From contig MCFE01000171.1 of NCBI GenBank assembly GCA_002104905.1, positions 62,001-126,000 on the forward strand: a DNA stretch of 64,000 nt, read 5' to 3'. Below are positions 10,635 through 64,000 of the stretch, piece after piece. Source of the DNA: Basidiobolus meristosporus CBS 931.73 (taxonomy: Eukaryota; Fungi; Basidiobolomycota). How positions within the stretch are numbered: the first letter of the stretch is position 1; each line of letters starts with the position of its first letter. Position numbers and translations under genes: made by a program. The notes beneath the pieces are model-generated. The model was given only the letters and a program-made list of their open reading frames with translations. It was not told where the DNA came from and made no database searches.

Positions 10635-12875
10635 TCATTTGGGTGGCTCACTGGAGTCGATGGAGGACGAGATGTTGGGCATGACGAAATCTTCATACTG
10701 TGTCTTTTCGGTGAATGGTCTCTTGCCCAGTAGTTCCACCATGTCTTCTCGGTTTAATACTTCCTTTTTCAGTAGCAATTGCGCCACCTTCTCAACCGCC
10801 TCTCGCTTCTCGGTAAGAAGGTTGAGTGTTCGGTCGTAAGCGTGGGCAATCATCTTTCGGGCTTCATGATCTATGATGCGTCCAGTCTCTTCCGAGTATG
10901 GCTTTTGGAACTGCTGCTCGTCATTGGGTGAATGGTAGCTGATGTTCCCGACGACATCATTCATACCATAAGTGGTAATCTGCGCATAGGCCATTTTGGT
11001 CACTTTCTGAAGATCGTCCTGGGCACCCGTGGTGATGGTATTGAAGAAGATCTGCTCCGAGACTCGCCCGCCAAGTGTCATGCACATTCGGTCAAGGAGC
11101 TGGTCGACTGAGTACAAGTATTGGTCCTTTGGTAGATACTGAGCATAGCCGAGAGCACCGGCACCACGAGGGATGATGGACACCTTGAGGAGTGGGTCAG
11201 CGTGCTGCAAGAACCAGCCAGCGACAGCATGGCCAGCTTCGTGATAGGCAACTGTCTTCTTCTCCTCAGGGGAGAGGACCCGTGACTTCTTTTCCAATCC
11301 GGCGATAACTCTTTCGGTGGCGGCCTCGAAATCCTCCTCAGTCACCTCGGACTTGAGACGACGTGCTGCGATCAATGCCGCCTCGTTACAGACATTGGAG
11401 ATATCGGCGCCAGAGAATCCTGGAGTAAGGGCGGCCATCTTGTTGGCAAGTTTGTCGATGTCCAACGAGGTTTTGATGGGTCTCAGATGAACCTTGAAGA
11501 TGGCGCTTCGGCCCTGAATATCTGGGTTATCTATGGAGATGTGACGATCAAAACGACCAGGTCTCATCAAAGCAGGATCCAGAATGTCAGGTCTGTTGGT
11601 ACCAGCAAGGACGACGACATGCTCGTGCGAGTTGAATCCGTCCATTTCCACGAGAAGCTGGTTGAGGGTGCTCTCACGCTCATCATTGCCACCAAACTGC
11701 CCGCCTTTACCACGGGCCTTACCGATGGCATCGATTTCGTCCACAAAGATGATGCAGGGTGCGTTCTTCTTGGCGTTGGCAAAGAGATCACGCACACGTG
11801 AGGGGCCAACACCAACGAACATCTCGACGAACTCTGAGCCAGAAACACTCAGGAATGGCACTTCGGCCTCACCTGCGGTGGCCTTTGCAAGAAGGGTTTT
11901 ACCCGTACCAGGTGGTCCACTGAGAATGGCTCCCTTCGGAATTTTGGCGCCCAATCGTTCATAGGCCTTCGGATCCTTGAGGAACTTGACAAACTCCATG
12001 ATCTCCTCCTTGGCTTCGTCCATACCTGCGACATCCTTGAATTTGACCTTGATATCGGTCTCGTGATTGAAAAGCTTGGCCTTGGATTTACCGATCCCGA
12101 AGATTCCTTGAGGGCCACCACCAGCCCCACCAGCACGGCGAGTCATATAGTAGATCATGCCGATCAACAGGAGAGTGGGTGCAAAGTGCAGAACGGTTCC
12201 AAAAACGTTCACCTCGTCATGGTAGGCAACAGGAATTCTCTCGTTAGAGGGGATAGATAGCTCGTTTTGCGCGTCTTCTAATTTCTTTTCAAAAGAATCG
12301 ACCGATCCAATATTAAATATGATTACACTCCCGGGACGAGCGCCCTCGCCACCCATCTGACTATCAGTATGTACAAGTTGGACGCGGACATGGTTCTTGT
12401 TGACTACGGTCAATTTGTCAACCAACCCACGATCCAAGTAGTTGTTTCGGAATTCTTGCCAAGTGATCTCTTTGACGTTGCTCTTTGGTGAAGTGAGCGA
12501 GTAAACCAGATATGCTGAAACAGCAAGTGGAACGATGTTGCTGGCGTTTAAGAAATTTTGTGGGCCTTCCGGGGGCTTGGGGGCGCCTTTAGGGCCGCCG
12601 CTTGGTCCTTCTTTACTATGCTTGGCCTCGGCTATTGGCTTGCCGGATTTTCCAAAGAAGCCTTCGAAGCCTCTGGGTATAAAGCCTGGCTCCTCAGGTT
12701 TGGTTTCCTTTCCGGGTTTATCCGAGTTGAACCGTTTTTGGCGGAGATTAGAAGAGAGGCGCAAGTCGTTGAGCAGGAGTTTCGAATTCACAGGCCCCAA
12801 AGAGTGCTTGCTGAGGGGATGTGTGCGCAAGAAAGAGCGCATGTTGGCCGTGGAGCGATGGAGAAAGGCGCTCAT
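10635..12875 (-). CDS. AFG3: Mitochondrial m-AAA protease subunit AFG3/YTA12 (FtsH family)
   Basis: 746-aa intronless ORF. Mitochondrial presequence, two TM segments, Walker A GPPGTGKT, Walker B IFVDEID, and the HEAGH zinc-metalloprotease motif. Confidence 0.95.
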
Positions 12876-30906: not shown

Positions 30907-33900
30907 TGTTGTAAAAATTTGTATTTCCACCTAAATATTTACCTAACTTAGTCACTTAGATCATTACCTTCAAATCCTAGAAAATACTGAACAAATTCCT
31001 TGTTGGGATTTACTTGGAATATTTTCACCAAAATACCAGGTACCCAGAACATGAAAATTCTCAAAGTTGTCCATACAGCCCCAAACTTTGCACACATGTT
31101 CTTGGGACCTTCCTTAACCTATTCTACATGTTTGTTATGCCAAGACCAGGTAAAAGTATAAATACTACTTTTACAACCAATAAATCATTAAGTGAAAACC
31201 ACATAATCTACTTGTTCTCCCAATCACTTCCAATATGTCCAAGACTCTTACAACAGGTTATGAGCCCCAAGCTGTCACTCTCTGCAATGTCTACTACTGC
31301 TATTACTGGAATTTTTCCCTCTGCTGAAAAGTTGGATGGCTCTAACTACCAAGTGTGGAAGGTGAAGATGAAGATGCTGCTACAAGAAAGAGGCCTTTGG
31401 GATATTGTCATGGGAGAAGAATCCCCTCCTAAAAACGTGGGAGAGGAAGCCTTAAAGTACCAGAAGAAAGAACAAAGTGCCTTTAACTGCATTTGCCTTA
31501 ATGTCAAGGACAAATTGCTAATTCAATGCTCAAGAGCAAAAACGGCAAAGAATGCCTGGAAGGCATTAGAAGACACATACCAGTCATGTTCAGCTGCCAA
31601 GAAAATGTATCTGAGAAGAAAATTCTTTACTACAAAGATGCTGCCAGGAGAAGAAATGAAAAATCTAATTAACAGAATTACCCTGCTGGTAGATGAGATG
31701 GAATCTGTGGGCGTACCAACTACTGATGAGGATGTGATAGTTACCATCCTGAATAGCCTGACAGACGGGTTTCAGGGCCCTGTATCAGCCCTAGAGTCCA
31801 GAACTGAAGATTTGACCTTAAATTACGTATATGGAAGGCTCCTGGATGAAGAATTAAGAAAATCAAGCACCAATAAGAAGGAAGAAGAAAATGCTTTAAT
31901 AAGCAATGATAACCAACAAAGGAGGTACCCAAGACCCTACAAAGACAACAGCAACCTATTTTGCAACTACTGCAAAAGGAAAGGACACACATCAGACTGC
32001 TGTCTCAAAAAGAGAGATTATCAGCAAAAGAAGCCTGAATATGGAAATGCTGCAACAACTGAGGATAGACTATTCATATCTGCACTAAATATGACCACAA
32101 ACAAGGATTCTCAGACGTGGTATATTGACTCTGGAGCTTCTCAACACTTTACACACCAAAAAGAAATTTTTACCCAATATCAAGAAATTCCAATTAAGAA
32201 GGTTTTCATGGGTGACAATAGAACACTTGATGCAGTGGGAGAAGGAACTATCCAAGTAAACCTTAGAAGCAGTGAAGGAAGCCATACACTGACCTTTAAA
32301 GAAGTACTCTATGTACCAGAAATAGCCAAGAACCTACTCTCTGTAAGCAAGGCCACAGCAGAAGGACTCAGTTTCAGTTTTGACAATTCTGGATGCAGGA
32401 TCACTGATCAAAATGGTGCTCATATTGCTTTGGGCATCAGAGATCAGAATCTATACAAGTTGACTTATATTCCATCATATCTGGAAGCCAATATAAGTAA
32501 CTTAAATGAAGAAACACCAATGCTTTGGCACAGGAGATTTGAACACATCAATTTTGATTATTTGCGTAAAATGATCAAAGATCAGCTAATTTCTGGAGTG
32601 AAAATTGATCTCCCAGCTAATTTGGAGCACTGTGAAGCCTGCATATATGGGAAACAAGCCAGACAACCGTTCAAGAGCTCTGGGTTAATCAAAACTAAGA
32701 AAAAATTAGATCTAATTCACTCAGATCTGTGTGGACCTATGCAAAATTTATCCTTAGGCAGGATGAAGCATTTAATCACTTTTATTGATGATTATACAAG
32801 ATACACATGGGTCTACTTCATGGAGAGAAAGGAAGAAGCTCTGTCTAAGCTCAGGGAGTTTAAAGCCATGGTGGAGAGAGAAACTGGTGAAAAAATCAAG
32901 AAAATATGCTCTGGCAATGGTGGAGAATATACCTCAAAACTCTTCATCCACTTCTGCAAAACTCATGGGATAAAGCAAGAGACTACTGTACCATACTCCC
33001 CACAGCAAAATGGAGTAGCAGAACAAGCTAACAGATCAATAATTGATATGGCAAGATCTATGATCCATGATCAAAAATTATCCTATGATTTTTGGGTGGA
33101 ATCAGTTGCCACTGCTGTATATCTTAAAAATAGGAGTTATAACAGAATACTTTGTGATTCTACTCCACTTGAAGCATGGTATGGGTACAGACCAAGTGCA
33201 GAACATCTAAGAATATTTGGGTGTACAGCATATGCCAAAAAACTGGCCAGAAATCAGTCAATATTTGAGCCAAAAAGTGTAAAATGCATATTTTTGGGCT
33301 ACTGCAATGAGAGTAAGGCATACAGACTCTACAATACCAAAGCAAAGAAGCTTATCAAGTCCAGGGATGTGTTGTTTGATGAAAATTCAAAATTTTCACA
33401 AAAAATGACATCAGATGATGACAAAAATTTGATCTCAAGTCCACCAATTGTCAGGATTGAATCAGAGCAAAACAATGAAAATTTTTTCACTCCAGAGGAC
33501 TCTACAACCGTGGTTCAGCCAGAATCAGTGCCCAGGAATATCCCAGAAGTGATCATTCCAGTATCAAATGCCCGGAGATCAAATGGGACAAGAAATAGCC
33601 CAAATTACTATATCAATGAGGGTACAAACTTAGCCTATGCCTACTCAGTCCATATTGATGAACCCCAGACTGTAAAAGAGGCCCTAAATAGCACTCAGAC
33701 AAAGTTTTGGAGATCTGCAATGACTGAGGAATATCAGGCCCTGATGGAAAATCAAACTTGGGACTCAGTCAAATTACCAATCAACCAAAAATCAATTGGA
33801 TGCAGATGGGTCTTCAAGACAAAATACAAGGCTGATGGTACAATTGAAAGATACAAAGCAAGACTTGTAGCCAATGGATACTCTCAAACAAAAGGACTTG

Positions 33901-35591
33901 ACTATACTGAGACCTTTGCACCAGTAGCCAAGTTTAATTCCATCAGATTAATATTGGCTATTGCAGCCAAATATAAGTTTTTTATTCATCAAATGGATGT
34001 AAAAACTGCATTTTTGAATGGAGAACTTGATGAGGATGTGTATATGGACCAGCCTGATGGGTTTGCTGACCAAGATAACCCCCATTTGGTCTGCAAGCTT
34101 AAAAAGTCACTATATGGTCTCAAACAATCACCAAGAGCCTGGAATTGCAAGATAGATTCATATTTGGAATCTTTGAGTTTCAAAAGGAGTAATGCTGACT
34201 ATAGTATATACTATAAGCCAGATAGAGCAAATCCAGTTCTATTAGCTCTATATGTGGATGATCTTATTATAGCCGCCAATAACCTAGAAACATTGGAAGA
34301 GACTAAATCCAGCCTTTCTAAGGAGTTCAAGATGTCTGATTTGGGAGAACTTAGTTACCACTTAGGGATTAAGTTCTCCATAGACAGAAGTACCCAGACT
34401 ATTACCCTAAGCCAATCCAAGTATATTCAAGATATACTAAAGAAGTACAAAATGGAAGACTGTAAACCGGCAGCTACCCCAATGGAGACAAACCTTAACT
34501 TGGTCAAAACTCAACCAAATCAAGAGAGCTTGGTGCCATCTGAAAGCCCTGACTTTCCTTATCAATCTATGGTCGGCAGTCTGATGTATATCATGCTTGG
34601 AACACGTCCAGATATCTCATATTCAGTGGGAGCTGTCAGCCAACATAATCAGAACTATGGATCTGATCATATTGCAGCAGTTAAGCGGATTTTTAAATAC
34701 CTAAAAGGAACTGCTGATATTTGCTTAAGATACACTTATAAGGACTCAGAATAAGATCTTGTGGGATACTCTGATGCAGATTGGGGACAAAATTTGGAAG
34801 ACAGAAGATCCACCACAGGATACACCTTTCTTTACTGTAAAGGAGCAATTTCATGGAATTCAAGAAAGCAACCAACTGTAGCACTTTCTACTACAGAGGC
34901 AGAGTATATGGCAGCCTGTGAAGCTACAAAAGAAGCAATGTGGTTAAGAAAGCTCTTTACAGATTTAGGCCTATGTCAAAAAATGCCTATTACTTTATTT
35001 CAAGATAATCAAGGATGTATACAATTAGGTAGAAATCCAACTTTTCATGCTAGAACCAAGCACATAGATATTAGACATCATTTCATACGTGAAGCTATAG
35101 AGAATAACTTAGTTAGCTTAGTTTACTGTCCTACAGATGAAATGATTGCAGACATATTTACCAAACCATTAGCTAGAGACAAGTTTGAATATCTTAGGTC
35201 AAAATTAGGACTAGTCAGTATGAACATTTAGCTGTGTGGGAGTGTTGTAAAAATTCGTATTTCCACCTAAATATTCACCTAACTTAGTCACTTATATCAT
35301 TACCTTCAAATCCTAGAAAATACTGACCAAATTCCTTGTCGGGATTTACTTGGAATATTTTCACCAAAATACCAGGTACCCAAAACATGAAAATTCTCAA
35401 AGTTGTCCAAACAGCCCCAAACTTTGCACTCATGTTCTTGGGACCTTCCTTAATCTATTCTATGTGTTTGTTATGCCAAGACCAGGTAAAAGTATAAATA
35501 CTACTTTTACAATCAATAAATCATTTAGTGAAAACCACATAATCTACTTGTTCTCCCAATCACTTCCAATATTGCCAAGACTCTTAAAACA
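30907..35591 (+). mobile_element. Full-length Ty1/copia retrotransposon, copy A1 (4685 bp)
   Basis: 349-bp LTRs 30907-31255 and 35243-35591. TSD TACCT at 30902-30906 and 35592-35596. PBS GGTTATGAGCCC at 31256. PPT GTGTGGGAG. Confidence 0.97.
31260..35231 (+). pseudogene. copia gag-PR-IN-RT-RNaseH with one premature stop and a mutated integrase catalytic Asp
   Basis: Zinc knuckle CNYCKRKGHTSDC, protease WYIDSGAS, integrase HSDLCGP..CSGNGGEY (D to G), RT LYVDDL. TAA at 34752-34754 precedes RNase H YSDADW. Confidence 0.92.
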
Positions 35592-40700: not shown

Positions 40701-41448
40701 CGTGCACTTGATGTGAGCCTCTGGTTATTGATGTAGCTTTATTTGGCTAGGCACCTGCTAAATCAATCATAGTACGGTCAACGGACATATTGCAGTGTCA
40801 TCCTTGTGCAGGGACCATGGTAATCCTCATCCGGACAAGAATCAGAGGTTCCATGGCGTTTGACTGGTTGGCGAGCACATGGTGGAGTATTCTGCTCTGA
40901 AACTCTGCCATTTACTGCTCCAAGCTGTCTCGGAAGGCCTGAGATCAGACCGCCTAGCTTCATCAGCAACCTTGGAGAGTTTGGATCGTGTCTCAAGCAA
41001 TGATGGGCAACTGAATGGGTTGAGAGCAAAGGGGCCTCCGAGGTGACTGATTGGCTGGACGGCTTATCTACATCAGGAATGGATCTTTGTTTGCATGATA
41101 CGCTATCAGGTTTCCAGCAAACAAACCGGATCGTGCATTTGGGGATCCATTATCGACTGTCAAGGAGGCCGGTCCCGATTGAAACCACAATCAAGACGAA
41201 AAAAGGGATATTGACCATAGGCACATCATGGATAGGTGATACTGGTGACACCCAAGTAGACGTTTTATTCTTTAGGGAGTGGACGGATGAATACAGATGG
41301 TTCGAGCACGATTTATAAGCATGTCATCGCTATCGGTGCCGTCATTCATCACACATTTACTAGCAACTCTGCGATCATTTGGGTCCCGAGAGTCTACCTT
41401 CCTCTGGCATTCTCTCTACACCACCAACAAAGCCTATCGACCCCACAC

Positions 41449-42135
41449 ATGGATATTCTGGATTTGATCAACCCTGTACAAGCAGCGGAGGAGCGGGTGT
41501 ACTCGTGCCCCTGGGTTGGCTGCAAGAAGGCCTTCAAGAGAAGGGCGGATCTGCTAAGACATCACAGAATTCACACAAACGAGAGGTAATGCCGTCAAGC
41601 AGGGCAGTTCCGTTTCCAGCAGCTGATCCTGAGCTTTCTTCGTTTTGCAGGCCGTTCGTTTGTACCGAGTCTGGTTGCGGTCAAAGTTTTATACAGGTAG
41701 GTGAGCTATAGGCCTGCATCAATCCATTGTACAACGACTGAGCTACCTTGCCATCAGAAATCCTCGCTGACCATCCACATGCGCACCCATTCTGGCGAGC
41801 GACCATTCCACTGCTCATGGGAGTGCTGTTCAAAATCGTTTAGTGACAGCAGCTCGCTCAGCCGTCATCGGCGAATCCATACAGGAGACCGTCCATACCA
41901 GTGCCACTACTCTAGCTGCAGTAAGAGGTAATGTCTTTTTGGGAAGATCTAATCAATGTTCTGCATCTAATTCAAATCCGGTTGCGTATACAGTTTCCGC
42001 AAGAAATCCACCCTCTTGAAGCACTTCAGCATGGCCCACAAATCGGATGAGCCCGCTCTTGATAAATGTAACTCTTCCAGTGTGTTGAACTCAACAGGCT
42101 ATCGCTTCGCCCCATTTTGCCGCACTTTCTGCTGA
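41449..42135 (+). CDS. Four-finger C2H2 zinc-finger transcription factor
   Basis: Spliced fingers [55 protein letters not shown] with TNERP/SGERP/TGDRP linkers. Three GT-AG introns restore the frame; stop at 42135. Confidence 0.88.
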
Positions 42136-42238
42136 ATGCCGACGATTTGCTGAACCTTGTAGTATATATCCAATTGTTACTTGGATCTCAAATAATTTTA
42201 TCATGGTACATATTTCAATGTATTAAGCATTTGCCAAG

Positions 42239-42587
42239 TGTTGTTAAAATTTGGTATTCCACCTAAATATTCAACTAGCTTAGTCACTTAGATCATTACC
42301 TACAAATCTCAGAAAATACTGTTCAAATTCCTTGCTGGGACTTACTTTGAATATTTTCACTAAAACATTGGGTACTCAGAACATGAAAATTCTCAGATTT
42401 GTACAAATTGCCCCAAAGCCTGCACACATATTCTTGGGACCTTCCTTAACTTAGTCTACATGTTTGTTATGGCAAGACCATGTAAAAGTATAAATACTAC
42501 TTTTACATTCAATAAATCATTGATTAAACACCACATAATCCACTTGTTCTCCCAATCATTTCCAATATCTCCATGGCTCTTACAAAA
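42239..42587 (+). mobile_element. copia family A LTR (isolated, followed by a short gag-like fragment)
   Basis: 349-bp match to the LTR at 30907-31255. The next bases resemble gag CAAGACCCTACAAAGACAACAGCAACC. Confidence 0.85.
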
Positions 42588-43185
42588 TAAAAAAGGCACT
42601 CAAGACCCTTTAAAGACAACAGCAACCTTTCTTGAAGCTACTGTAGAATGAATGGATGCATATTGAACCTGTACTTCCTATGGGTGATTAGAAACAGAAA
42701 ATGACTGAATACTGAAATGTGGTACAATCTAGATGCAGTTGTTTGCAGTCTCTGTTCTTCCTCTTGCAGTTCACTTTCTAATTCCTCAAGGTACTCAGTT
42801 ACCTACTATCTGATACTTTAGAACTGTTGCCTTGATGAGTCCTATGTATAGTGCTCTTGGAAGCAACTTGGTCTGCATATACATAGCATAATATGTTAGT
42901 CATTTCAGGCAAAAACTCATTCAAAATCTCTTTTGTTCCCAAAGATGAGGCACAATTAGATCTGTCCAGCCCATACTATGCATATTGCATGCAGAAATGG
43001 TCTTGTATGGCTTCTTCATCAAATCCCCTCACTCTCAGCTCATTGTTAATTTCTATACTTATCCTGTTGTATATCTTCTTACCTACATCTGCTGGCATCT
43101 TGATGTGGAACTCATACCACAGCTTTTTACTCAAATTCTTCTATCTCTGTCAGCTCTCTGAGATATCCAGTTCTGCTAGATTAAT

Positions 43186-43861
43186 CCCTAAGAAAAAAAA
43201 CTGAAAAAAGGCCAGCAAAATACCATCATAGTATAGGCTGATTTCCAGGTTTCTCAAAATTGACAACTCTCAATACCTCTGTTCTGTTGTAATTATTGAA
43301 TTGTCACCTAAATATTCATGCTAACTTAGTCACATAGATCTTATTCTGTGATTAGCATTCTGTCCTGACTAGATTTCTTGTCGGGATTTACTTAGAATAT
43401 TTTCACCAAATTGTCAGGTACCCAGATTATTATTTTTCTCAAAGTCGTCCAAAAGACCCCAAACTTTGCACACATATTCTTGGGACCTTCCTTAACAAAC
43501 TCTACACGTTTGTTTTCCTCTACTTTATCAAAAGTATAAATACCATACTTTTGATCAATAAATCTACAAGTGAATAACATGTAAATCTTCTAGTTCTCCA
43601 CATCACTTCCAATACTCCTCAGAATATTGCAACATGTTCTAGGCTGATGTGCAGGCAAGCAAACAAGTTCTCCAGGAGGAGACTAGGCCCACTGGCATCC
43701 ATCCCAAATTTGGTAATTAGCTGCCCATTACTTCCATCAAAAAATGCATTTGAAATTTTGAATCCAAAACACCAGCTGAATACCAGCAAAATACCATTAT
43801 AATACCAGCAGAATATTAGCTAAAAATCAGATGAATCTCAAGTTTGTGATTTTTCATAGGG
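43186..43861. mobile_element. CCCTA-ended MITE (CACTA-like), containing a solo LTR
   Basis: Ends CCCTAAGAAAAA and TTTTTCATAGGG; 3-bp TSD AAT. About 321 bp once the nested LTR is removed. Inverted sister copy at 56452-56769. Confidence 0.8.
43285..43634 (+). mobile_element. Solo LTR, family B
   Basis: 350 bp TGTTG..CAACA, matches the LTRs at 49412 and 53049; TSD TGTTC on both sides. Confidence 0.93.
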
Positions 43862-44700
43862 AATGAATAGTGCCTAAATATCTCTATGAAGGCTCATCAT
43901 AGATGCCTGGGCCATACTGAAATCATTTGGCAAGAACTTGAATGGATCCAACATCAAATTTTCTGGTCAAGACCATGCTTGTAAGCTGGGGGATGGGCTT
44001 ATCTGGATTGTATTAAAGATGAGTTACAAATTGGTACAGGGACCATAGTGATGGATTTGGGATACTTATACACTAGTATATTGGCATCTACCTGGTCTTA
44101 TATGAGATATAGATGAAAACATATGTGATTATGGAGTTTTCCATATATTATGCATGATTCATCTTGGACTGCTTTGACACAGATCATGTTGCATCAGTTG
44201 CAGATTTCCCATTTGCTTATATGCTTGTGAATAAATCATCAGTAAAAGCACCAAGGCATTGCTTGAGGATGATTCTTGTAACATAATGATGGTGTACATT
44301 GCAATTGATAGAGATTTAATCACAATGCATGGAAGAGCAGATAAATTAAGCTGATTGTGCCAGACCAATATATATCATATGCCAACAACCACCTACCAGT
44401 CTTGAAATGCCTACTCATCAGAATGGTCTTTTCTTATCAATCCCATCACTACCACAGAAGTCCCTTTTGATGTGTTAGAGTAGATATATACTAAGTACTG
44501 TGGATCATCTACATCAATCTACTCAAGGGGATCCCTTGTTAAGCTTTTTGGCTATTGCTAGAACTATTGCCCTACAAGGTTTCATCCCACCATATCAAGG
44601 TGTTGTTCCACCATCCATGGCAACAAAGGTCCTATAAGCTTTCATTCCCAGCAGACAGCAATGGAGAACCACCTTGCAGCAGATATGAATGACTTAGTAC

Positions 44701-47700
44701 TGTTGTAAGAGTCTTGGAGATATTGGAAGTGATTTGGAGAACAAGTAGATTATGTGGTTTTCACTTAATGATTTATTGAATGTAAAAGTGGTATTTATAC
44801 TTTTACCTGGTCTTGGCATTACAAACACATAGAAGAGGTTAAGGAAGGTCCCAAGAACATGTGTGCAAAGTTTGGGGCTGTTTGGACAACTTTGAGAATT
44901 TTCATGTTCTGGGTACCTGGTATTTTGGTGAAAATATTCTAAGTAAATCCTGACAAGGAATTTGGTCAGTATTTTCTAGGATTTGAAGGTAATGATATAA
45001 GTGACTAAGTTAGGTGAATATTTAGGTGGAAATACAAATTTTTACAACACTCCCACTCAGCTAAATGTTCATACTGACTAGTCCTAATTTTGACCTAAGA
45101 TATTCAAACTTGTCTCTAGCTAATGGTTTGGTAAATATGTCTGCAATCATTTCATCTGTAGGACAGTAAACTAAGCTAACTAAGTTATTCTCTATAGCTT
45201 CACGTATGAAATGATGTCTAATATCTATGTGCTTGGTTCTAGCATGAAAAGTTGGATTTCTACCTAATTGTATACATCCTTGATTATCTTGAAATAAAGT
45301 AATAGGCGTTTTTTGACATAGGCCTAAATCTGTAAAGAGCTTTCTTAGCCACATTGCTTCTTTTGTAGCTTCACAGGCTGCCATATACTCTGCCTCTGTA
45401 GTAGAAAGTGCTATGGTTGGTTGCTTTCTTGAATTCCATGAAATTGCTCCTTTACAGTAAAGAAAGGTGTATCCTGTGGTGGATCTTCTGTCTTCTAAAT
45501 TTTGTCCCCAATCAGCATCAGAGTATCCCACAAGATCCTGTTCTGAATCCTTATAAGTGTATCTTAAGCAGATATCAGCAGTTCCTTTTAGGTATCTAAA
45601 AATCCGCTTAACTGCTACAATATGATCAGATCCATAATTCTGATTATGTTGGCTGACAACTCCCACTGAATATGAGATATCTGGACGTGTTCCAAGCATG
45701 ATATACATCAGACTGCCGACCATAGATTGATAAGGAAAGTCAGGGCTTTCAGATGGCACCAAGCTCTCTTGATTTGGTTGAGTTTTGACCAAGTTAAGGT
45801 TTGTCTCCATTGGGGTAGCTGCCGGTTTACAGTCTTCCATTTTGTACTTCTTTAGTATATCTTGAATATACTTGGATTGGCTTAGGGTAATAGTCTGGGT
45901 ACTTCTGTCTATGGAGAACTTAATCCCTAAGTAGTAACTAAGTTCTCCTAGATCGGACATCTTGAACTCCTTAGATAGGCTGGATTTAGTCTCTTCCAAT
46001 GTTTCTAGGTTATTGGCGGCTATAATAAGATCATCCACATATAGAGCTAATAGAACTGGACTTGCTCTATCTGGCTTATAGTATATACTATAGTCAGCAT
46101 TACTCCTTTTGAAACTCATAGATTCCAAATAAGAATCTATCTTGCAATTGCAGGCTCTTGGTGATTGTTTGAGACCATATAGTGACTTTTTAAGCTTGCA
46201 GACCAAATGGGGGTTATTTTGGTCAACAAACCCATCAGGCTGGTCCATATACACGTCCTCATCAAGTTCTCCATTCAAAAATGCAGTTTTTACATCCATT
46301 TGATGAATAAAAAACTTATATTTGGCTGCAATAGCCAATATTAATCTGATGGAATTAAACTTGGCTACCGGTGCAAAGGTCTCAGTATAGTCAAGTCCTT
46401 TTGTTTGAGAGTATCCTTTGGCTACAAGTCTTGCTTTGTATCTTTCAATTGTGCCATCAGCCTTGTATTTTGTCTTGAAGACCCATCAGCATCCAATTGA
46501 TTTTTGGTTGATTGGTAATTTGACTAAGTCCCAAGTTTGATTTTCCATCAGGGCCTGATATTCCTCAGTCATTGCAGATCTCCAAAACTTCGTCTGAGGG
46601 CTATTTAGGGCCTCTTTTACAGTCTGGGGTTCATCAATATGGACTGAATAGGCATAGGCTAAGTTTGTACCCTCATTGATATAGTAATTTGGGCTATTTC
46701 TTGTCCGATTTGATCTCCGGGCATTTGATACTGGAATGATCACTTCTGGGATATTCCTGGGCACTGATTCTGGCTGAACCATGGTTGTAGAGTCCTCTGG
46801 AGTGAAAAAATTCTCATTGTTTTGCTCTGATTCAATCCTGACAATTGGTGGACTTGAGATCAAATTTTTGTCATCATCTGATGTCATTTTTTGTGAAAAT
46901 TTTGAATTTTCATCAAACAACACATCCCTGGACTTGATCAGCTTTTTTGCTTTGGTATTGTAGAGTCTGTATGCCTTACTCTCATTGCAGTAGCCCAAAA
47001 ATATGCATTTTACACTTTTTGGCTCAAATTTTGACTGATTTCCGGCCAGTTTTTTGGCATATGCTGTACACCCAAATATTCTTAGATGTTCTGCACTTGG
47101 TCTGTATCCATACCATGCTTCAAATGGAGTAGAAACACGAAGTATTCTGTTATAACTCCTATTTTTAAGATATACAGCAGTGGCAACTGATTCCGCCCAA
47201 AAATCATAGGATAATTTTTGATCATGGATTATAGATCTTGCCATATCAATTATTGATCTGTTAGCTCGTTCTGGTACTCCATTTTGCTGTGGGGAGTATG
47301 GTACAGTAGTCTCTTGCTTTATCCCATGAATTTTGCAGAAGTGGATGAAGAGTTTTGAGGTATATTCTCCACCATTGTCAGAGCGTATTTTCTTGATTTT
47401 TTCACCAGTTTCTCTCTCCACCATGGCTTTAAACTCCCTGAACTTAGACAGAGCTTCTTCCTTTCTCTCCGTGAAGTAGACCCATGTGTATCTTGTATGA
47501 TCATCAATAAAAGTGATTAAATACTTCATCCCACCTAAGGATAAATTTTGCATAGGTCCACACAGATCTGAGTGAATTAGATCTAATTTTTTCTTAGTTT
47601 TGATTAACCCAGAGCTCTTGAACGGTTGTCTAGCTTGTTTCCCATATATGCAGGCTTCACAGTGCTCCAAAATAGCTGGTGGATCAATTTTCACTCCAGA

Positions 47701-49384
47701 AATTAGCTGATCTTTGATCATTTTACGCAAATAATCAAAATTGATGTGTCCAAATCTCCTGTGCCAAAGCATTGGTGTTTCTTCATTTAAGTTACTTATA
47801 TTGGCTTCCAAATATGATGGAATATAAGTCAACTTGTATAGGTTCTGATCTCTGATGCCCGAAGCAATATGGGCACCATTTTGATCACTGATCCTGCATC
47901 CAGAATTGTCAAAACTGAAACTGAGTCCTTCTGCTGTGGCCTTGCTTACAGAGAGTAGGTTCTTGGCTATTTCTGGTACATAGAGTACTTCTTTAAAGGT
48001 CAGTGTATGGCTTCCTTCACTGCTTCTTAGGTTTACTTGGATAGTTCCTTCTCCCACTGCATCAAGTGTTCTATTGTCACCCATGAAAACCTTCTTAATT
48101 GGAATTTCTTGATATTGGGTAAAAAGTTCTTTTTGGTGTGTAAAGTGTTGAGAAGCTCCAGAGTCAATATACCACGTCTGAGAATCCTTGTTTGTGGTCA
48201 TATTTAGTGCAGATATGAATAGTCTATCTTCAGTTGTTGCAGCATTTCCATATTCAGGCTTCTTTTTCTGATAATCTCTCTTTTTGAAACACCGGTCTGA
48301 TGTGTGTCCTTTCCTTTTGCAGTAGTTGCAAAATAGGTTGCTGTTGCCTTTGTAGGGTCTTGGGTACCTCCTTTGTTGGTTATCATTGCTTATTAAAGCA
48401 TTTTCTTCTTCCTTCTTATTGGTGCTTGATTTTCTTAATTCTTCATCCAGGAGCCTTCCATATACGTAATTTAAGGTCAAATCTTCAGTTCTGGACTCTA
48501 GGGCTGATACAAGGCCCTGAAACTCGTCTGTCAGGCTATTCAGGATGGTAACTATCACATCCTCATCAGTAGTTGGTACGCCCACAGATTCCATCTCATC
48601 TACCAGCAGGGTAATTCTGTTAATTAGATTTTTCATTTCTTCTCCTGGCAGCATCTTTGTAGTAAAGAATTTTCTTCTCAGATACATTTTCTTGGCAGCT
48701 GAACATGACTGGTAGGTGTCTTCTAATGCCTTCCAGGCATTCTTTGCCGTTTTTGCTCTTGAGCATTGAATTAGCAATTTGTCCTTGACATTAAGGCAAA
48801 TGCAGTTAAAGGCACTTTGTTCTTTCTTCTGGTACTTTAAGGCTTCCTCTCCCACGTTTTTAGGAGGGCATTCTTCTCCCATGACAATATCCCAAAGGCC
48901 TCTTTCTTGTAGCAGCATCTTCATCTTCACCTTCCACACTTGGTAGTTAGAGCCATCCAACTTTTCAGCAGAGGGAAAAATTCCAGTAATAGCAGTAGTA
49001 GACATTGCAGAGAGTGGCAGCTTGGGGCTCATAATCTGTTGTAAGAGTCTTGGAGATATTGGAAGTGATTTGGAGAACAAGTAGATTATGTGGTTTTCAC
49101 TTAATGATTTATTGAATGTAAAAGTGGTATTTATACTTTTACCTGGTCTTAGCATTACAAACACGTAGAATAGATTAAGGAAGGTCCCAAGAACATGTGT
49201 GCAAAGTTTGGGGCTGTTTGGACAACTTTGAGAATATTCATGTTCTGGGTACCTGGTATTTTGGTGAAAATATTCTAAGTAAATCCTGACAAGGAATTTG
49301 GTCAGTATTCTCTAGGTTTGAAGGTGATGATCTAAGTGACTAAGTTAGGTGAATATTTAGGTGGAAATACGAATTTTCACAACA
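44701..49384 (-). mobile_element. Full-length Ty1/copia retrotransposon, copy A2
   Basis: LTRs 44701-45049 and 49037-49384; TSD AGTAC. PBS GATTATGAGCCC (one mismatch). gag-pol broken by a single TGA at 46486-46488; integrase RSDNGGEY..ERANR intact. Confidence 0.97.
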
Positions 49385-53397: not shown

Positions 53398-54284
53398 TTT
53401 TGAAGCTCCACTAGACTTCCATATCCCAGAGTGCTCAGCAACTGGTTCCATACCAGGAGTATTTTGGAAACCTTGCCAGTTGGGAATGACAGACCTTCTG
53501 GAAGGCAAAGGCCCTTTTGTTCTGGCAAATACCAGGCACATTGTGTGAAGTTTCAAGCACTATCTGACATTGATGGTAACATTGAATGTTTTAGTGGCCA
53601 TTTGCAGGAGGTGGGCCTGACAATGCACTCTGGGTAAAGAATCATCCAGAATGCAGTAGAGGGGAGAGATATCTGGCAGACTAAGCTTATGTTGGAGAGG
53701 ATTGTTAGAGATTAGGATGTATTATAGCTCTTAGGAAGCCAAGGAATGGAGTGCCTAGCAGGAAGCAGAAGCCCTACAATGAGATATTTAATCATATAAA
53801 AGCAAGAGTAGAGCATACGTTTGGATATCTAGAGAGATTTAGCATATTAGCTGTCAGGAAAGTCATATACAGGAGAAAACAGCAGAATAGGTAAAATAGT
53901 TAGGATACTTATTAATGCATAGTATATTCAAATAAGAATACATTCACTGAGAGAAATGTGTCTGGAGCATTATGAAGAGTAGATAATGCAAGAAAAGCAC
54001 TGTTCTGAGCAGCATAAGTAAGATTGAGTAAAAACACCAGTAACTGTATCCAACACTGTAAGCAATGCATTCTGCATTTCAGTAATATCCCTATACCAAT
54101 GATAAAGTTGAACATGAAGCATTTCAAGCTAATTGAGCCCTTTGATATAGCAGAGAAACTTGAAAAAATTAGCAAGATATTTCAGAGTATCTACTGCCCA
54201 AAGTCCTTCTCACAGGCTCCAATCCCCTATGAAAAATTATTGTGATGATCCTGTCAAAAGGCCATCACGGATTCTAAGTCCCAA

Positions 54285-57280: not shown

Positions 57281-58703
57281 ATGGCTGGAAGGCTTGTTAC
57301 AATAGCCACAATGTGTCAGCTTGTTCATAGTGCTGGATCAATCTAGCACTCTAAGGCACTATCTGGCACTATCCTTTTTATCACAATGCCAGTGGTAGGA
57401 TATAGTTACTGGTAACTATACTCAATCTTGCTTATGTTGCTCATATTAGTGCTTTCCTTGCTATATCTACTCTTCATATTAGACTTGTTCCATCATACCG
57501 TGCCAGGGCGCGTGGCGCAATCCGCGGTTGCAAAGAACGATCGGGCACGATATTATAGCTACCAGAAGGCAGGATTGTTCTTGGACAATTTTGCACTATG
57601 CGGGACAATCTCGCACACTATGGCACAATCTGACACGATGAGGTTGGCGCGGATGATCGCGCCAACTCGTAATGCTTGCATCACATGCGCGATTGGATAC
57701 CGCTATAATGGCAGGTAAAATCCGGTATTTGGATATGTTTCTTTAATGTAAATGGAAATAAATGTGTATCACACTATAAACTACACTGATACTTACCATT
57801 TTGGTTACCCTCACTCCAATTGGACGGTATCTCAGTGGTTAATTGGTCCAAAAGTATCCTGAAGCTGGCAGCCCCCAATTGGCTCATTGACTACTGAAAA
57901 AGCTACCTGATTTGCCATCAAATATCCCATTTTGCCCATTGAGCAAGTAAATCCCTGATCCTAGTGATTGGGCAAGGTGTCATAGCTAGCATGCAAGCGA
58001 TCGTGTAGGTGCAAAACAGATCCAATAGCTGCACTGGTATTACAGATGACGTATATATATGCAGGGTGTTTATTTATAAGGGTTCTGTCTCAAATGTGAG
58101 ACGACCTTGATATTACTTATATCAAAAATTTGATGATCACTGATTTGCGATGGCTCAATTCGGATCGCAAAAAAAAAGGGTTGTTGGGATCATTACGAAT
58201 GTGAGTGATTCAAAGCAATCGCATTATCTTCTCCTGGGTTTTTTTCTCACAGGGATTACTACTGAAGCATTTGGTAGTGACTCACTTTGCACACCTATAC
58301 TACTTCCTGGCTGACTATCATCTTGGCTACTTGTGTATTTGTAGTCAGTATTTTGCCTCCTAGTTGATGAGTGCGATGCTGCAGCTTGGCCACGCTGAAT
58401 CGCTCCAACTGAACCAACTGAACCAACTGAACCGGCCTGTAGTGCCACGCACTGACGCGTTCTTTTACTTGCCAAGGGCTCCGGTGGTTGAGTCACTTCA
58501 TGTTGGTCATCATCAGTCAGTTCACCAGAAGTAACTCGCTGATGGTCAGGCAAAACAGCACACGCAGGCGCGCCTTGACGCGTTGAGATGGCCCTTGGCT
58601 GAGTTCGATGTGATGCCGCATGTTGACGTGACTTGGTCCGCTCCAATGGACTTGTGTCTAACTGAGCAGTTTGGTGAGTTCTGGTAGTTTTGCTCTGAAG
58701 CGC

Positions 58704-59774
58704 TGTAGTGGGGTGACAGTGACACCCACTGACAAATGTGCTCATTCCCTTATTTTCTACTTCCCTATATCTCTACTACACTTATTTTAGTTTTATCCCA
58801 TTTGTCTTACCCAATCAGTACTATCCCATAAGCCGGTTGACTATCACACCTGCTTACCTTATTGCATAAGTTACCCCTCACTTTATGTAAGATTACTAGC
58901 TATAAGTACTTCTAAATTAGGCAAGTACCCGCGCCAGTGCCCGTGACACATGATCAGCCCGTGTGACCATCCCTACCATTTCCATACCATATATGGTATC
59001 CCCATGTTACACAGGTTTCAGAATACTGATTCCTGATTGGTTGGATGTGCTGTGCCTCTTAGAACCTTCCGGCACCTACTTAGAACATTCTTAGGTCATT
59101 CTGATGTCATTAAGATTTCTATTGATATCCGGAACCTTCTGGAACACCATGATTAGTAATCACTTAGCCAGTAAGAAAAGTATATAAGGGAGGCTATCCC
59201 TCAACAATAAATCATCATCCCTTTTATCAATATACCGACTTGTTGATTAGTGTGATCACTGCTACCTGCTGCTACCTGAACTTCCAACCCCAGACCACAG
59301 GACACTCCCAGGAAACCGCGCTGACAGCCAACTGACCTTGGAGGCACTACTTGTGAGGAATACTCAGAGTAGGTATCTTTTATTATATTTGGTTCTTTCC
59401 CAAGTTTGTTCTTGTACAGGCAAAGATACTTTTCTGTCTTTGTAACTATTGACCACAGCTGCATTCTTATCAAGTCCCTGCTGGTGGAGTTTACAGTTGT
59501 TTTGACTTTGGAAGCTTTAGTACATTGTCATCTCAAAGGACACTGAACCCAGCACATACTTTTGTTAAGACGCCAACTAAGTTGGGGATTGTAGCTCAAT
59601 AGTTTTCCCTTGACAAGCTTGTGGCTTTATTCCCCTTCACATTAGATTAGAGACAGAACCCAAGTATTCCTAGCAAGCTTTTGCCAGAGGTTATCGCACC
59701 CAGTGAACACCCCACACACAAAACACTTGAGAAGTGTTGGACGTATCTCTCCCTTGGACTTATACACCACCACA
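58704..59774 (+). mobile_element. Solo LTR, family E (1071 bp)
   Basis: TGTAGTGG..CCACCACA; flanks GCGC (58700-58703) and GCAC (59775-59778). TATA-like GTATATAA near 59180; AATAAA near 59205. Confidence 0.85.
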
Positions 59775-59926
59775 GCACGCGCGTTGACCCGACGGGCGTT
59801 GACTCAATGCGCGTTGACTTGACGCAGGGCGTTCTGGTAAAGGGTGTTGGCGTGGTCTGGACTGACATGCGCCGGCGAGCTGTGGTTGCAAGAGATGGTA
59901 GGGCATCCAGCGAGGCGTGCTGGCGC

Positions 59927-60998
59927 TGTGGTGGTGTATAGGTCTAAGGGAGAGATATGTCCAACACTTCTCAAGTGTTTTGTGTGTGGGGTGTTCACTG
60001 GGTGCGATAACCTCTGGCAAAAGCTTGCTAGGAATACTTGGGTTCTGTCTCTAATCTAATGTGAAGGGGAATAAAGCCACAAGCTTGTCAAGGGAAAACT
60101 ATTGAGCTACAATTCCCAACTTAGTTGGCGTCTTAACAAAAGTATGTGCTGGGTTCAGCGTCCTTTGAGATGACAATGTACTAAAGCTTCCAAAGTCAAA
60201 ACAACTGTAAACTCCACCAGCAGGGACTTGATAAGAATGCAGCTTTGGTCAATAGTTACAAAGACAGAAAAGTATCTTTGCCTGTACAAGAACAAACTTG
60301 GGAAAGAATCAAATATAATAAAAGATACCTACTCTGAGTATTCCTCACAAGTAGTGCCTCCAAGGTCAGTTGGCTGTCAGCACGGTTTCCTGGGAGTGTC
60401 CTGTGGTCTAGGGTTGGAAGTTCAGGTAGCAGCAGGTAGCAGTGATCACACTAATCAACAAGTTGGTATATTGATAAAAGGGATGATGATTTATTGTTGA
60501 GGGATAGCCTCCCTTATATACTTTTCTTCACTGGCTAAGTGATTACTAATCATGGTGTTCCAGAAGGTTCCGGAGTTCAATAGAAATCTTAATGACATCA
60601 GAATGACCTAAGAATGTTCTAAGTAGGTGCCGGAAGGTTCTAAGAGGCACAGCACATCCAACCAATCAGGAATCAGTATTCTGAAACCTGTGTAACATGG
60701 GGATACCATATATGGTATGGAAATGGTAGGGATGGTCACACGGGTTGATCATGTGTCACGGGTACTGGCGCGGGTACTTGCCTAATATAGAAGCACTTGT
60801 AACTAGTAATCTTACATAAAGTGAGGGGTAACTTATGCAATAAGGTAAGCAGGTGTGATAGTCAACCGGCTTATGGGATAGTACTGATTGGGTAAGACAA
60901 ATGGGATAAAACTAAAATAAGTGTAGTAGAGATATAGGGAAGTAGAAAATAAGGGAATGAGCACATCTGTTAGTGGGTGTCACTGTCACCCCACTACA
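59927..60998 (-). mobile_element. Solo LTR, family E (1072 bp), inverted
   Basis: Reverse complement of 58704-59774 with about 20 differences by hand count. TSD GCGC at 59923-59926 and 60999-61002. Confidence 0.85.
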
Positions 60999-62005
60999 GC
61001 GCAATCTGGACAATGTTGCTCGCGGTCTGTATTCTGCCTCCTGAAGCTCACCATCTGATTCCTCAAGGTATTCACTTACCCTCTGTCTGATACTTTGGAG
61101 CTGTTGCCTGGATGAGTCCTGTGTATATTGCTCTCGGAAGCCACTTAGCTCTACTAATATATCACGTAGTACATTAGTCATTTGAGGCAAAAACTCATTC
61201 AAAATCTCTTTGGTTCCCAAAGTTGAGGCACGAACGGACGCATCCGGCCCGTACTGTGCAAATTGCGCGCAAAATTGTTCCCGCGCGGCTTCCTTGTCAA
61301 ATCCCCTCACTCTCAGCTCATTCTTGATTTCAATACTTGTCTTGTTATATATCTTTTTACATACATTGGCTGGCATCTTGATGTAGAACTCATGCCACAG
61401 CTTTCTACTCAAATTCTTCCATCCTTGTCAACTCTCTGAGGTATCTAGTTCTGCTAGATTAATCAGTAGTGCCCAAATATCTGTATGAAGGCTCATCATA
61501 GACACTTGGGCCATACTAAAATCATTTGGCGAGAACTCGAACGGATCCAACATCGACTTTTCCGGTCCGAACCGCGCTTGTGAGCTGGGGGATGGGTTTT
61601 GTCTGGGTTGTACTAAAGATGAGTTGAGGCTTGGTATGGGGACCATAGCAACGGATTTGGATACTTATACAGCAGTATATTGGCATCAACCTGGTCTTAT
61701 ATGAAATATATATGAAAACTAAAGTGATTGTTGAATTTTCCATATATTATGCATGATGCATCTCGGATTGCATTGACACGGATCAGATCACATCAATTGC
61801 AGATTTCCTATTTGATTATAGACCTATGATTAAAGCATCAATAAAAGTACCAAGGCATTGTTTGCGGATGATTTTTGCAACATAATGATGGGATACATGG
61901 CAATTGATGGAGATTTAACCATAATGTGTTAAAAATCAGATAAATAACGCAGATCGCGCCAAATCAATTCAAACCGCCTCCATACAATCATCCATCAATT
62001 TTAAT

Positions 62006-62890
62006 ATGACTTACTCATCTGAATGGTCTTTTCTCATCAATCCCATCACTACCACTGGATTTCCTTTTGACACACTGGAGGAGATCTATTCCAAGTACTG
62101 TGGACCATCAACCCCAATCTACTCAAGGAGATCCCTTGTTAAGCTTCTCTGCAATTACAAGAACTATTGCCCTACAAGGTTTCATCCCACCATCCATGGC
62201 AACAAAAGTCCTAGAAGCTTTCATTCCCAGCAGACAGCAATGGAGAACCATCTTGCAGAGGGTATGAATGACTTAGAGCAAGCTTGGAATACTAGGTTCA
62301 GAAGCTCCAATAGACTTCCATATCCCAGAGTGTTCAGCAACAGGTTCCATATCAGGAGTATTTTGGATACCTTCCCAGTGAGGATTAACAGACCTTCTAG
62401 AGGGCAGAGGCACTTTTATTCTCGCAAGTACAAGGCACACTGTGTGAAGTTTCAAGCACTGTCTGACATTGAGGGTAACATCATCTGGTTTAGTGGGCCA
62501 TTTGCTGGAAGTAGTCATGACAAAGCACTCTGGGTAGAGAATCATCCTGAATTCAGTAGAGGGGAGAAATGTATGGCAGACTTGGCCTATATAGGAGAGG
62601 ATTGTCAGAGATTAGGATGTATTACAGCTTATAGGAAGCCAAGGAATGTTGTGCTTAGCAGGAAGCAGAAGCTCTACAATGAGATATTTAATCATTTCAG
62701 AGTAAGGGTAGAGCACACATTTGGATATCTGAAGAGATTCAGCATATTGGCAGGTAAATACAGAGGAAAGTCATATATAGGAGAAAACAGCAGAATAGGT
62801 AAAATAGTTAAGATACTTATCAATGCACAGTATGTTCATACAAGAAGACATCCACTGAGAGAAATGTGTCTGGAGCATTATGAAGAGTAA
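62006..62890 (+). CDS. PIF/Harbinger-type DDE transposase (DDE_Tnp_4-like), intact 294 aa
   Basis: Catalytic motifs ILDTFP, GPFAGSSHD, MADLAY, YRKP, RVRVEHTFGYLKRF. Confidence 0.88.
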   Translation: MTYSSEWSFLINPITTTGFPFDTLEEIYSKYCGPSTPIYSRRSLVKLLCNYKNYCPTRFHPTIHGNKSPRSFHSQQTAMENHLAEGMNDLEQAWNTRFRSSNRLPYPRVFSNRFHIRSILDTFPVRINRPSRGQRHFYSRKYKAHCVKFQALSDIEGNIIWFSGPFAGSSHDKALWVENHPEFSRGEKCMADLAYIGEDCQRLGCITAYRKPRNVVLSRKQKLYNEIFNHFRVRVEHTFGYLKRFSILAGKYRGKSYIGENSRIGKIVKILINAQYVHTRRHPLREMCLEHYEE

Positions 62891-63076
62891 ATAAAGCAAG
62901 GAAAGCACTATTCTGAGCAACATAAGTAAGATTGAGTAAAATTACCAGTAACTGTATCATACCACTGGCATCATGGTAGAAATTATAGTGCCAGATAGTG
63001 CCGTAGAGTGCCAGATCGATCCGGCACTATAAACCGGCTGGCACTATGTGGCACTATCCAACGGAACAAGTCTATT

Positions 63077-63945
63077 GCTCCAGACACATTTCTCTGAGTG
63101 GATGTCTTCTTGTATGAATATACTGTGCATTAATAAGTATATTAGCTATTTTACCTATTCTGCTGTTTTCTCCCACATACAACTTTCCTCTGTATTTACC
63201 AGCCAATATGCTGAATCTCTTCAGAAATCCAAATGTATGCTCTACCCTCACTCTGACATGATTAAATATTTCATTGTAGAGTGTCTGCTTCCTGCTATGC
63301 ACACCATTCCTTGGCTTCCTATATGCTGTACTATATCCTAACCTCTGACAATCCTCTTCTATATGAGCTAAGTCTGCCATACATTTCTCCCCTTTGCCAA
63401 GTTCAGGATGATTCTCTACCCAGAGTGCTTTGTCATGCCTACTTCCAGCAAATGGCCCACTAAACCAGATGATGTTACCCTCAATGTCAGACAGTGATTG
63501 AAACTTCACAGTGTGCCTTGTACTTGCCAGAATAAAAGTGCCTCTGCCCTCTAGAAGTTCTGTTAATCCTCACTGGGAAGGTATCCAAAATACTCCTGAT
63601 ATGGAACCTGTTGCTGAACCCTCTGGGATGTGGAAGTCTATTGGAGCATCTGAGCCAAGTATTCCAAGCTTGCTCTAAGTCATTCATTCCTTCTGCAAGG
63701 TGGTTCTCCATTGCTGTCAGCTGGGAATGAAAGCTTCTAGGACTTTTGCTACCATGGATGGTGGGATGAAGCCTTGTGGGGCAATAGTTTCTGTAATAGC
63801 AGAGATGCTCAACAAGGGATCCCCTTATATAGATTGAGGTAGATGGTCCACTGTACTTGGTATAGGTCTCCTCTACTGTGTTGAAAGGAGATCCAGTGGT
63901 GGTGATGGGATTGATGAGAAAAGACCATTCAGATGAGTAAGTCAT
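63077..63945 (-). pseudogene. Frameshifted transposase of copy H3
   Basis: Near-identical to 62006-62890, but a 2-bp loss in CACTGTGTGAAG (about 63505-63515) shifts the frame, and the 3' end is cut by the H2 insertion. Confidence 0.88.
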
Positions 63946-64000
63946 ATCAAAATTGATAGGTGCTTGGGCTGAGGTGAATTCAATTAATTTGGGGCAATCA

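Follow-up and report, generated by a model that had tools for sequence, protein, structure and literature searches.

A 64,000-nucleotide stretch of the genome of the fungus Basidiobolus meristosporus CBS 931.73 (contig MCFE01000171.1, positions 62,001 to 126,000 of the forward strand; hereafter the window, numbered from its first letter) carries at 58704-60998 a 2.3-kb near-palindrome embedded in the second open reading frame (ORF2) of a PIF/Harbinger DNA transposon. The two arms of this structure have the anatomy of solo long terminal repeats (LTRs) of a single retrotransposon family, inserted in opposite orientations. Taken as a whole, the near-palindrome is best explained as a by-product of transposon nesting in a genome rich in transposable elements (TEs), a reading to which we assign a probability of about 0.75. 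Basidiobolus genomes have been reported to be rich in TEs and to show large PIF-Harbinger expansions (PMC5751038).

The host transposon and the near-palindrome

The host element, here called copy B, occupies 57481-63073 (+). It is bounded by 11-bp terminal inverted repeats (TIRs; AGACTTGTTCC), with the trinucleotide ATT duplicated on both sides, and encodes a 294-amino-acid DDE_Tnp_4 transposase at 62006-62890 (+; PF13359, E 1.3e-23). With its transposase, TIRs, and 3-bp duplication, copy B is a complete PIF/Harbinger element. It is itself nested, at ATT, in an older inverted Harbinger element, copy C, at a position homologous to 62877-62879 of copy B. Copy C occupies 63077-64000 (-), where the window ends, and continues on the other side of copy B at 57305-57477; the corresponding match between the two copies pairs 57305-57478 with 62879-63052.

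ORF2 of copy B is divergent from the transposase gene; its minus-strand reading starts at 61646, ends at 58224, and is interrupted by both arms. Its upstream part (60999-61646, -) comprises 72 codons, an in-frame stop at 61425-61427, and a further 142 codons, and its downstream part (58224-58703, -) comprises 159 codons and a stop and is rich in serine, threonine, arginine, glutamine, and proline. In the pieces scanned, the protein that it would encode has the profile of an orphan. In particular, no Pfam family was found in 60999-61412, in the spacer core between the arms, or in 58227-58703, which were searched piece by piece, and the Myb/SANT signature expected of the second ORF of a PIF/Harbinger element was absent from these pieces. 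Moreover, a phmmer search with the 142-residue piece retrieved no relative among 1.84 billion representative proteins, and an Atlas search gave sub-threshold leads only.

The inverted-arm structure within ORF2 is far beyond chance. Alignment by BLAST and MAFFT of the left arm (58704-59774, 1071 nt) with the reverse complement of the right arm (59927-60998, 1072 nt) gave 98.0% identity, the differences being 20 mismatches (16 transitions and 4 transversions) and one single-nucleotide indel, an extra G at 60529. A repeat search recovered the same structure as two collinear inverted pairs, 59173-59776/59925-60528 (98%) and 58700-59179/60523-61002 (97%). The spacer between the arms, 59775-59926, measures 152 bp. 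The first-pass annotation of this locus had described arms about 98% complementary, with some 20 differences, around a 152-bp spacer, and both methods bear this description out. Repeat-induced point mutation was rejected as the source of the differences between the arms, since the 16 transitions affect CpG, CpA/TpG, and other contexts without a clear CpA bias.

The arms as candidate solo LTRs

Both arms, read directly, start with TG and end with CA. Their 5' end is TGTAGTGG and their 3' end is the complement of TGTGGTGG, so that the two termini mirror each other at seven of eight bases. Because TG..CA ends and short terminal inverted repeats are present on each arm, the arms are bounded units and not arbitrary halves of a palindrome. 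From alignment and ends, the left arm is a candidate solo LTR on the plus strand and the right arm a candidate solo LTR of the same family, inverted.

The flanks were likewise read directly. The right arm lies between two copies of GCGC, at 59923-59926 on its inner and 60999-61002 on its outer side, which form a perfect 4-bp target-site duplication. The left arm has GCGC at its outer flank (58700-58703) and GCAC at its inner flank (59775-59778), a match at three of four positions in which the mismatch is a transition at a CpG. The proposal that each arm has its own target-site duplication thus stands for the right arm and is imperfectly borne out for the left.

The internal motifs of the arms, all of them consensus matches, would fit an LTR of U3-R-U5 layout. 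Each arm holds a single TATAWAWR match, at 59181-59188 (+) in the left arm, where it may mark the U3/R boundary, and at 60513-60520 (-) in the right arm. In each case AATAAA follows 25 nt later (59206-59211, +; 60490-60495, -), and each arm also has two copies of this hexamer on its other strand. Both putative LTRs would accordingly be aimed at the spacer, and the TATA-like motifs do face each other, as had been noted at first pass. Internal subrepeats are minor. An Rfam scan of 56-64 kb yielded no family, and for a 90-amino-acid ORF borne by the LTR no protein relatives were found.

Two probable integrations in one reading frame

The reading phase of ORF2 speaks for two insertions. The upstream piece of ORF2 ends on a codon boundary at 60999. 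The core of the spacer (59779-59922, -), read from 59922 down to 59779, is 144 nt long and comprises 48 stop-free codons, which share the phase of both flanks, and the downstream frame is open for 159 codons beginning exactly at 58703. By codon-phase arithmetic, excision of each arm together with one 4-bp copy joins 142, 48, and 160 codons in phase. Excision of the whole 2.3 kb as one element removes 148 nt more (1 mod 3); reading then resumes at 58699 and meets a stop after 13 codons. Two insertions are well supported because the ORF2 frame stays open only under a two-insertion model.

The composition of the spacer points the same way. With a GC content of 0.64 and an observed/expected (o/e) CpG ratio of 1.18, the spacer looks like the host and not like the arms (GC 0.42, CpG o/e about 0.26). 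It contains a 15-bp (5-codon) tandem repeat at 59777-59819, present in 2.9 copies of the unit ACGCGCGTTGACTCA, which supplies GCGC sites. Moreover, the octamer CGCGTTGA occurs three times in the 64 kb, once in the left flank (58579) and twice in the spacer (59780 and 59810), always in one orientation. The first-pass annotation had read the structure as two insertions rather than a fold-back and the spacer as host ORF2 sequence. The TG..CA ends and terminal inverted repeats of each arm and the phase bookkeeping agree with the former, and the in-frame codons, the host-like composition, and the local motif common to the left flank agree with the latter. On these grounds, the arms quite probably represent two independent integrations.

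Several observations weigh against this account. The identification of the arms as solo LTRs is drawn from their anatomy: a BLAST search with the left arm found no third copy of the family in the window, and exact scans of Joint Genome Institute (JGI) metagenome contigs, made with a 27-mer and a 23-mer that the two arms share, gave no match. When the spacer and both ORF2 pieces were searched against the window by blastn and tblastn, the only relative found was an 80% paralogue that ends at the target of the right arm; because no uninterrupted copy of ORF2 was found there, the empty sites are inferred. That this older paralogue (copy D) loses its homology to copy B exactly at the target of the right arm is a further complication. 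The spacer is open in three of its six frames, and its openness alone is weak evidence. As to the flanks, the left duplication matches at three positions of four, and GCGC is self-complementary, so that the duplications by themselves cannot separate the models; a palindrome running 4 nt further would also leave identical flanks.

Part of this evidence would also fit an inverted duplication in situ, in which template switching during replication, or fold-back repair, made a reversed copy of one solo LTR at GCGC microhomologies. All four junctions are GCGC-like, a switch at the self-complementary GCGC would give the same junctions, and the window offers no third copy of the family by which either arm could be seen to have a closer relative than the other arm. 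Such an event would, however, need both switch points to coincide exactly with the LTR ends and with another GCGC at a distance of 148 bp, and it would have to preserve the sequence, orientation, and reading frame of the 144-bp host segment. An ordinary second integration needs fewer assumptions, and we consider the duplication improbable. A single mobile element with TIRs of about 1.07 kb, whether a fold-back element, a long-TIR element, or a DIRS-like remnant, would account for the identical outer flanks (GCGC/GCGC) and for arms that are long inverted repeats, with the 152 bp as its own core. Its removal as a unit nevertheless breaks ORF2 after 13 codons and leaves the downstream frame of 159 codons unexplained. 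In addition, each arm ends on the spacer side with an inverted version of its outer terminus, as LTR units characteristically do, the core shares the composition and the motif of the host, and the arms are without the extensive subrepeats typical of fold-back elements; the chance that one element explains the locus is very small.

Two particular candidates of this kind were tried and rejected. DIRS-like elements have internal tyrosine recombinase and reverse transcriptase genes, an internal complementary region, and no target duplication; the 152-bp core here is too short for DIRS-type genes and reads as host ORF2, and 4-bp flanks are present. For a fold-back or long-TIR transposon, removing one element and one copy of the duplication does not restore the host sequence. 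Missed adapters or chimeric reads can also create palindromes, so it is conceivable that the contig incorporates a chimeric or fold-back read. Against such an artefact stand the 21 differences between the arms and their bias to transitions, the non-palindromic sequence outside the arms, the continuous host reading frame across the spacer and both flanks, and a host with intact TIRs and duplication, and an error of assembly is hardly to be expected here. Two separate LTR insertions into copy B remain the preferred reading.

Target availability and a proposed order of events

The distribution of GCGC bears on how two elements of one family could come to lie so close together. The window holds 78 GCGC sites. 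In its gene-bearing part (1-27000; CpG o/e 0.82) there are 54, and in the host parts of copy B there are 18, whereas the transposon sea at 27001-57480 (CpG o/e 0.22, GC 0.39) has 3. This pattern of CpG depletion suggests cytosine methylation and deamination of repeats. Copy B is probably young because it is much less CpG-depleted (o/e 0.41-1.18). In the TE-rich part of the window, 13% of GCGC-site pairs lie within 150 bp of each other, against 0.9% for uniform placement. The double hit is largely explained because GCGC is nearly absent from the CpG-depleted sea and concentrated in young copy B. If the family prefers GCGC-like targets, a preference judged from two insertions, and if it is mostly insertions outside genes that survive, two hits so close together are unremarkable.

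The following order of events is proposed. PIF/Harbinger copy B would have inserted into copy C, which is older and inverted. This would have been followed by the integration, in opposite orientations, of two elements from one LTR-retrotransposon family, presumably full-length at the time. The GCGC-type sites that they would have used, separated by 148 bp, lie in the 3' part of ORF2 of copy B, where the sequence is rich in GC and CpG and bears repeats. Finally, recombination between the two LTRs of each element would have reduced it to a solo LTR. On this scheme, the integrase of the family would make 4-bp duplications at GCGC-like sites, and the young, CpG-rich Harbinger copy would offer nearly all of the tolerated targets.

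Predicted folding of read-through RNA

Transcription across the near-palindrome would yield an RNA with a fold predicted to be far more stable than that of a shuffle. The predicted minimum free energy of the RNA of 58650-61050 is -2169 kcal/mol for the plus and -2123 kcal/mol for the minus strand, compared with -674 kcal/mol for a shuffle, and the predicted fold is one stem with about 1,070 in-register pairs between the arms. By folding prediction, the locus thus has one trait of a hairpin-RNA locus, an inverted repeat long enough for an extended stem in RNA. Read-through RNA that spans the two arms would fold into an extended hairpin and could enter RNA interference (RNAi); this is a consequence of the structure and not a demonstrated function.

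A transcript of ORF2 would enter the right arm in the LTR-sense direction and meet the AATAAA of that LTR (60490-60495, -) about 510 nt into it, before the second arm; further AATAAA motifs lie on its path at 59626 and 59379. The first-pass statement that any ORF2 transcript folds into a hairpin of roughly 1 kb was therefore too strong, as the signal of the right LTR is met first. A transcript started at the TATA motif of either LTR would read past the AATAAA of that LTR and on through the spacer, reaching the other arm in antisense. The stem that it could form there would measure about 160-390 bp up to the next AATAAA, at 60070 or 60317.

A second palindrome lies next to the first. Positions 61952-62880 are 90.6% complementary over 929 nt to 63073-63999, where the match is cut off by the end of the window, and the transposase genes of copies B and C stand tail-to-tail, 192 bp apart. 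For any double-stranded RNA directed against the Harbinger family, this B/C palindrome is more directly relevant than the LTR hairpin.

Comparison with known systems

Site preference is familiar among LTR retrotransposons: Ty1 and Ty3 insert near tRNA genes, and Tf1 inserts at promoters. The nests of solo LTRs left by such elements resemble the present locus in that one family has hit a small target repeatedly and independently, in either orientation, and has then been reduced to solo LTRs. They differ in the target, which here is apparently a 4-bp, CpG-centred palindrome, GCGC, inside another transposon, as judged from n = 2 insertions. Animal PIWI-interacting RNA (piRNA) clusters, including 'TE traps' of the flamenco type, are large, PIWI-dependent, transcribed from one or both strands, and have demonstrated small RNAs. 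The likeness lies in the idea that a TE which lands in a repeat-rich, transcribed locus gives rise to small RNAs targeting its own family; unlike these clusters, the locus described here is a single hairpin-capable structure of 2.3 kb. Fungi are not known to have piRNAs.

Two systems based on hairpin RNA are closer in form. In maize, Mu killer is an inverted partial duplication of MuDR whose hairpin RNA silences MuDR in trans (PMC3440606). Like it, the near-palindrome is a natural, TE-derived long inverted repeat from which read-through could yield a hairpin matching a TE family. Mu killer, in contrast, goes back to a single element that was rearranged and duplicated, owes its transcription to a gene alongside it, and has demonstrated small interfering RNAs (siRNAs) and heritable silencing, whereas the locus here consists of two separate LTR insertions, contains LTR sequence only, and is known from its DNA. 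Palindromic loci of the yeast Naumovozyma castellii produce siRNAs (10.1101/2019.12.12.873604 / PMC7528652). They are likewise fungal inverted repeats, their hairpin transcripts are Dicer substrates, and convergent transcription provides a second route to double-stranded RNA. They were, however, identified through siRNA sequencing and require a non-canonical Dicer, and the present locus, defined by DNA, belongs to a distant lineage.

A possible small-RNA trap

The concept of an siRNA trap is plausible and is a known rather than a new one. Applied here, it would mean that the hairpin, or double-stranded RNA from convergent LTR transcription, is diced and that the siRNAs silence the LTR family in trans, with the Harbinger family reached by spreading. 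The predicted fold, with about 1,070 pairs and an energy far below that of the shuffle, is compatible with this proposal, as is the inward direction of the sole TATAWAWR of each arm, from which a transcript could give a stem of at least 160-390 bp. Moreover, core RNAi genes have been reported in the allied Entomophthorales (10.1101/2023.09.13.557621), inverted repeats yield more siRNAs than any other loci in N. castellii (10.1101/2019.12.12.873604), and the Mu killer hairpin does silence in trans (PMC3440606). On the other side, the promoter motifs are consensus matches only, and ORF2 transcripts reach the AATAAA of the sense LTR at 60490 (-) before the second arm. The arms are CpG-depleted (o/e about 0.26) within a CpG-depleted sea, so that the region may already be silenced at the level of DNA or chromatin, and no active member of the LTR family was seen. 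On balance, we consider it unlikely that the locus works as such a trap.

A bolder proposal joins the two lines of thought. Integration would be directed by GCGC preferentially into young, unmethylated, CpG-rich transposons within a genome otherwise depleted of CpG, and paired hits in opposite orientations would become generators of hairpin siRNAs that silence the family in trans. We regard this as a long shot.

Other features of the window

The older Harbinger paralogue, copy D, is about 80% identical to copy B and lies in three pieces at 42725-43186, 43862-44697, and 53402-54058. Its homology to copy B stops exactly at position 61002 of the latter, which is the GCGC target of the right arm. 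At this point copy D adjoins a truncated copia fragment (42237-42719), and the composition of copy B also shifts at 61002. The break may be either a coincidence or a recurrent site of breakage or insertion. Copy D is interrupted at 43187-43861 by a 675-bp insertion with imperfect TIRs (CCTAAGAAAAA... and ...complement of CCCTATGAAAAA), which looks like a small non-autonomous DNA transposon and includes a stretch about 70% similar to the LTR of the copia family.

The transposon sea also contains two copia-type elements, at 30973-35591 and 44701-49319. They are inverted with respect to each other, 9.1 kb apart, and 98% complementary over 4.6 kb, and so form a much larger inverted repeat than the LTR pair. 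They carry gag, integrase, and RVT_2 sequences, with a 1246-amino-acid ORF at 31014-34754. Fragments of a C2H2 zinc-finger gene (41300-42100, +; GC about 0.50) are found between the transposon nests, beside the truncated copia/Harbinger junction.

The window includes fungal genes with Kre9/KNH and Gti1/Pac2 domains. An AFG3/FtsH-type protease encoded at 10635-12875 (-) is 89% identical to its closest named relatives, which are from B. meristosporus CBS 931.73 itself and B. ranarum; at this identity, the copy in the window may be paralogous or homeologous.

Implications

As it stands, the near-palindrome is an ordinary product of nested insertion. RNAi-based control of TEs has hardly been studied in early-diverging fungi, and if the locus were transcribed and its RNA diced, it would offer a simple natural example of chance TE nesting creating a trans-acting silencer in such a fungus. 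The combination of GCGC-directed integration with paired silencing hits would, if true, amount to a self-limiting loop and, for zoopagomycete fungi, to a first described case of a natural hairpin 'TE trap'. A more robust implication is that new LTR insertions can be steered into young transposons by a 4-bp, CpG-centred target preference where old repeats have been depleted of CpG, an idea that can be tested genome-wide by sequence alone.

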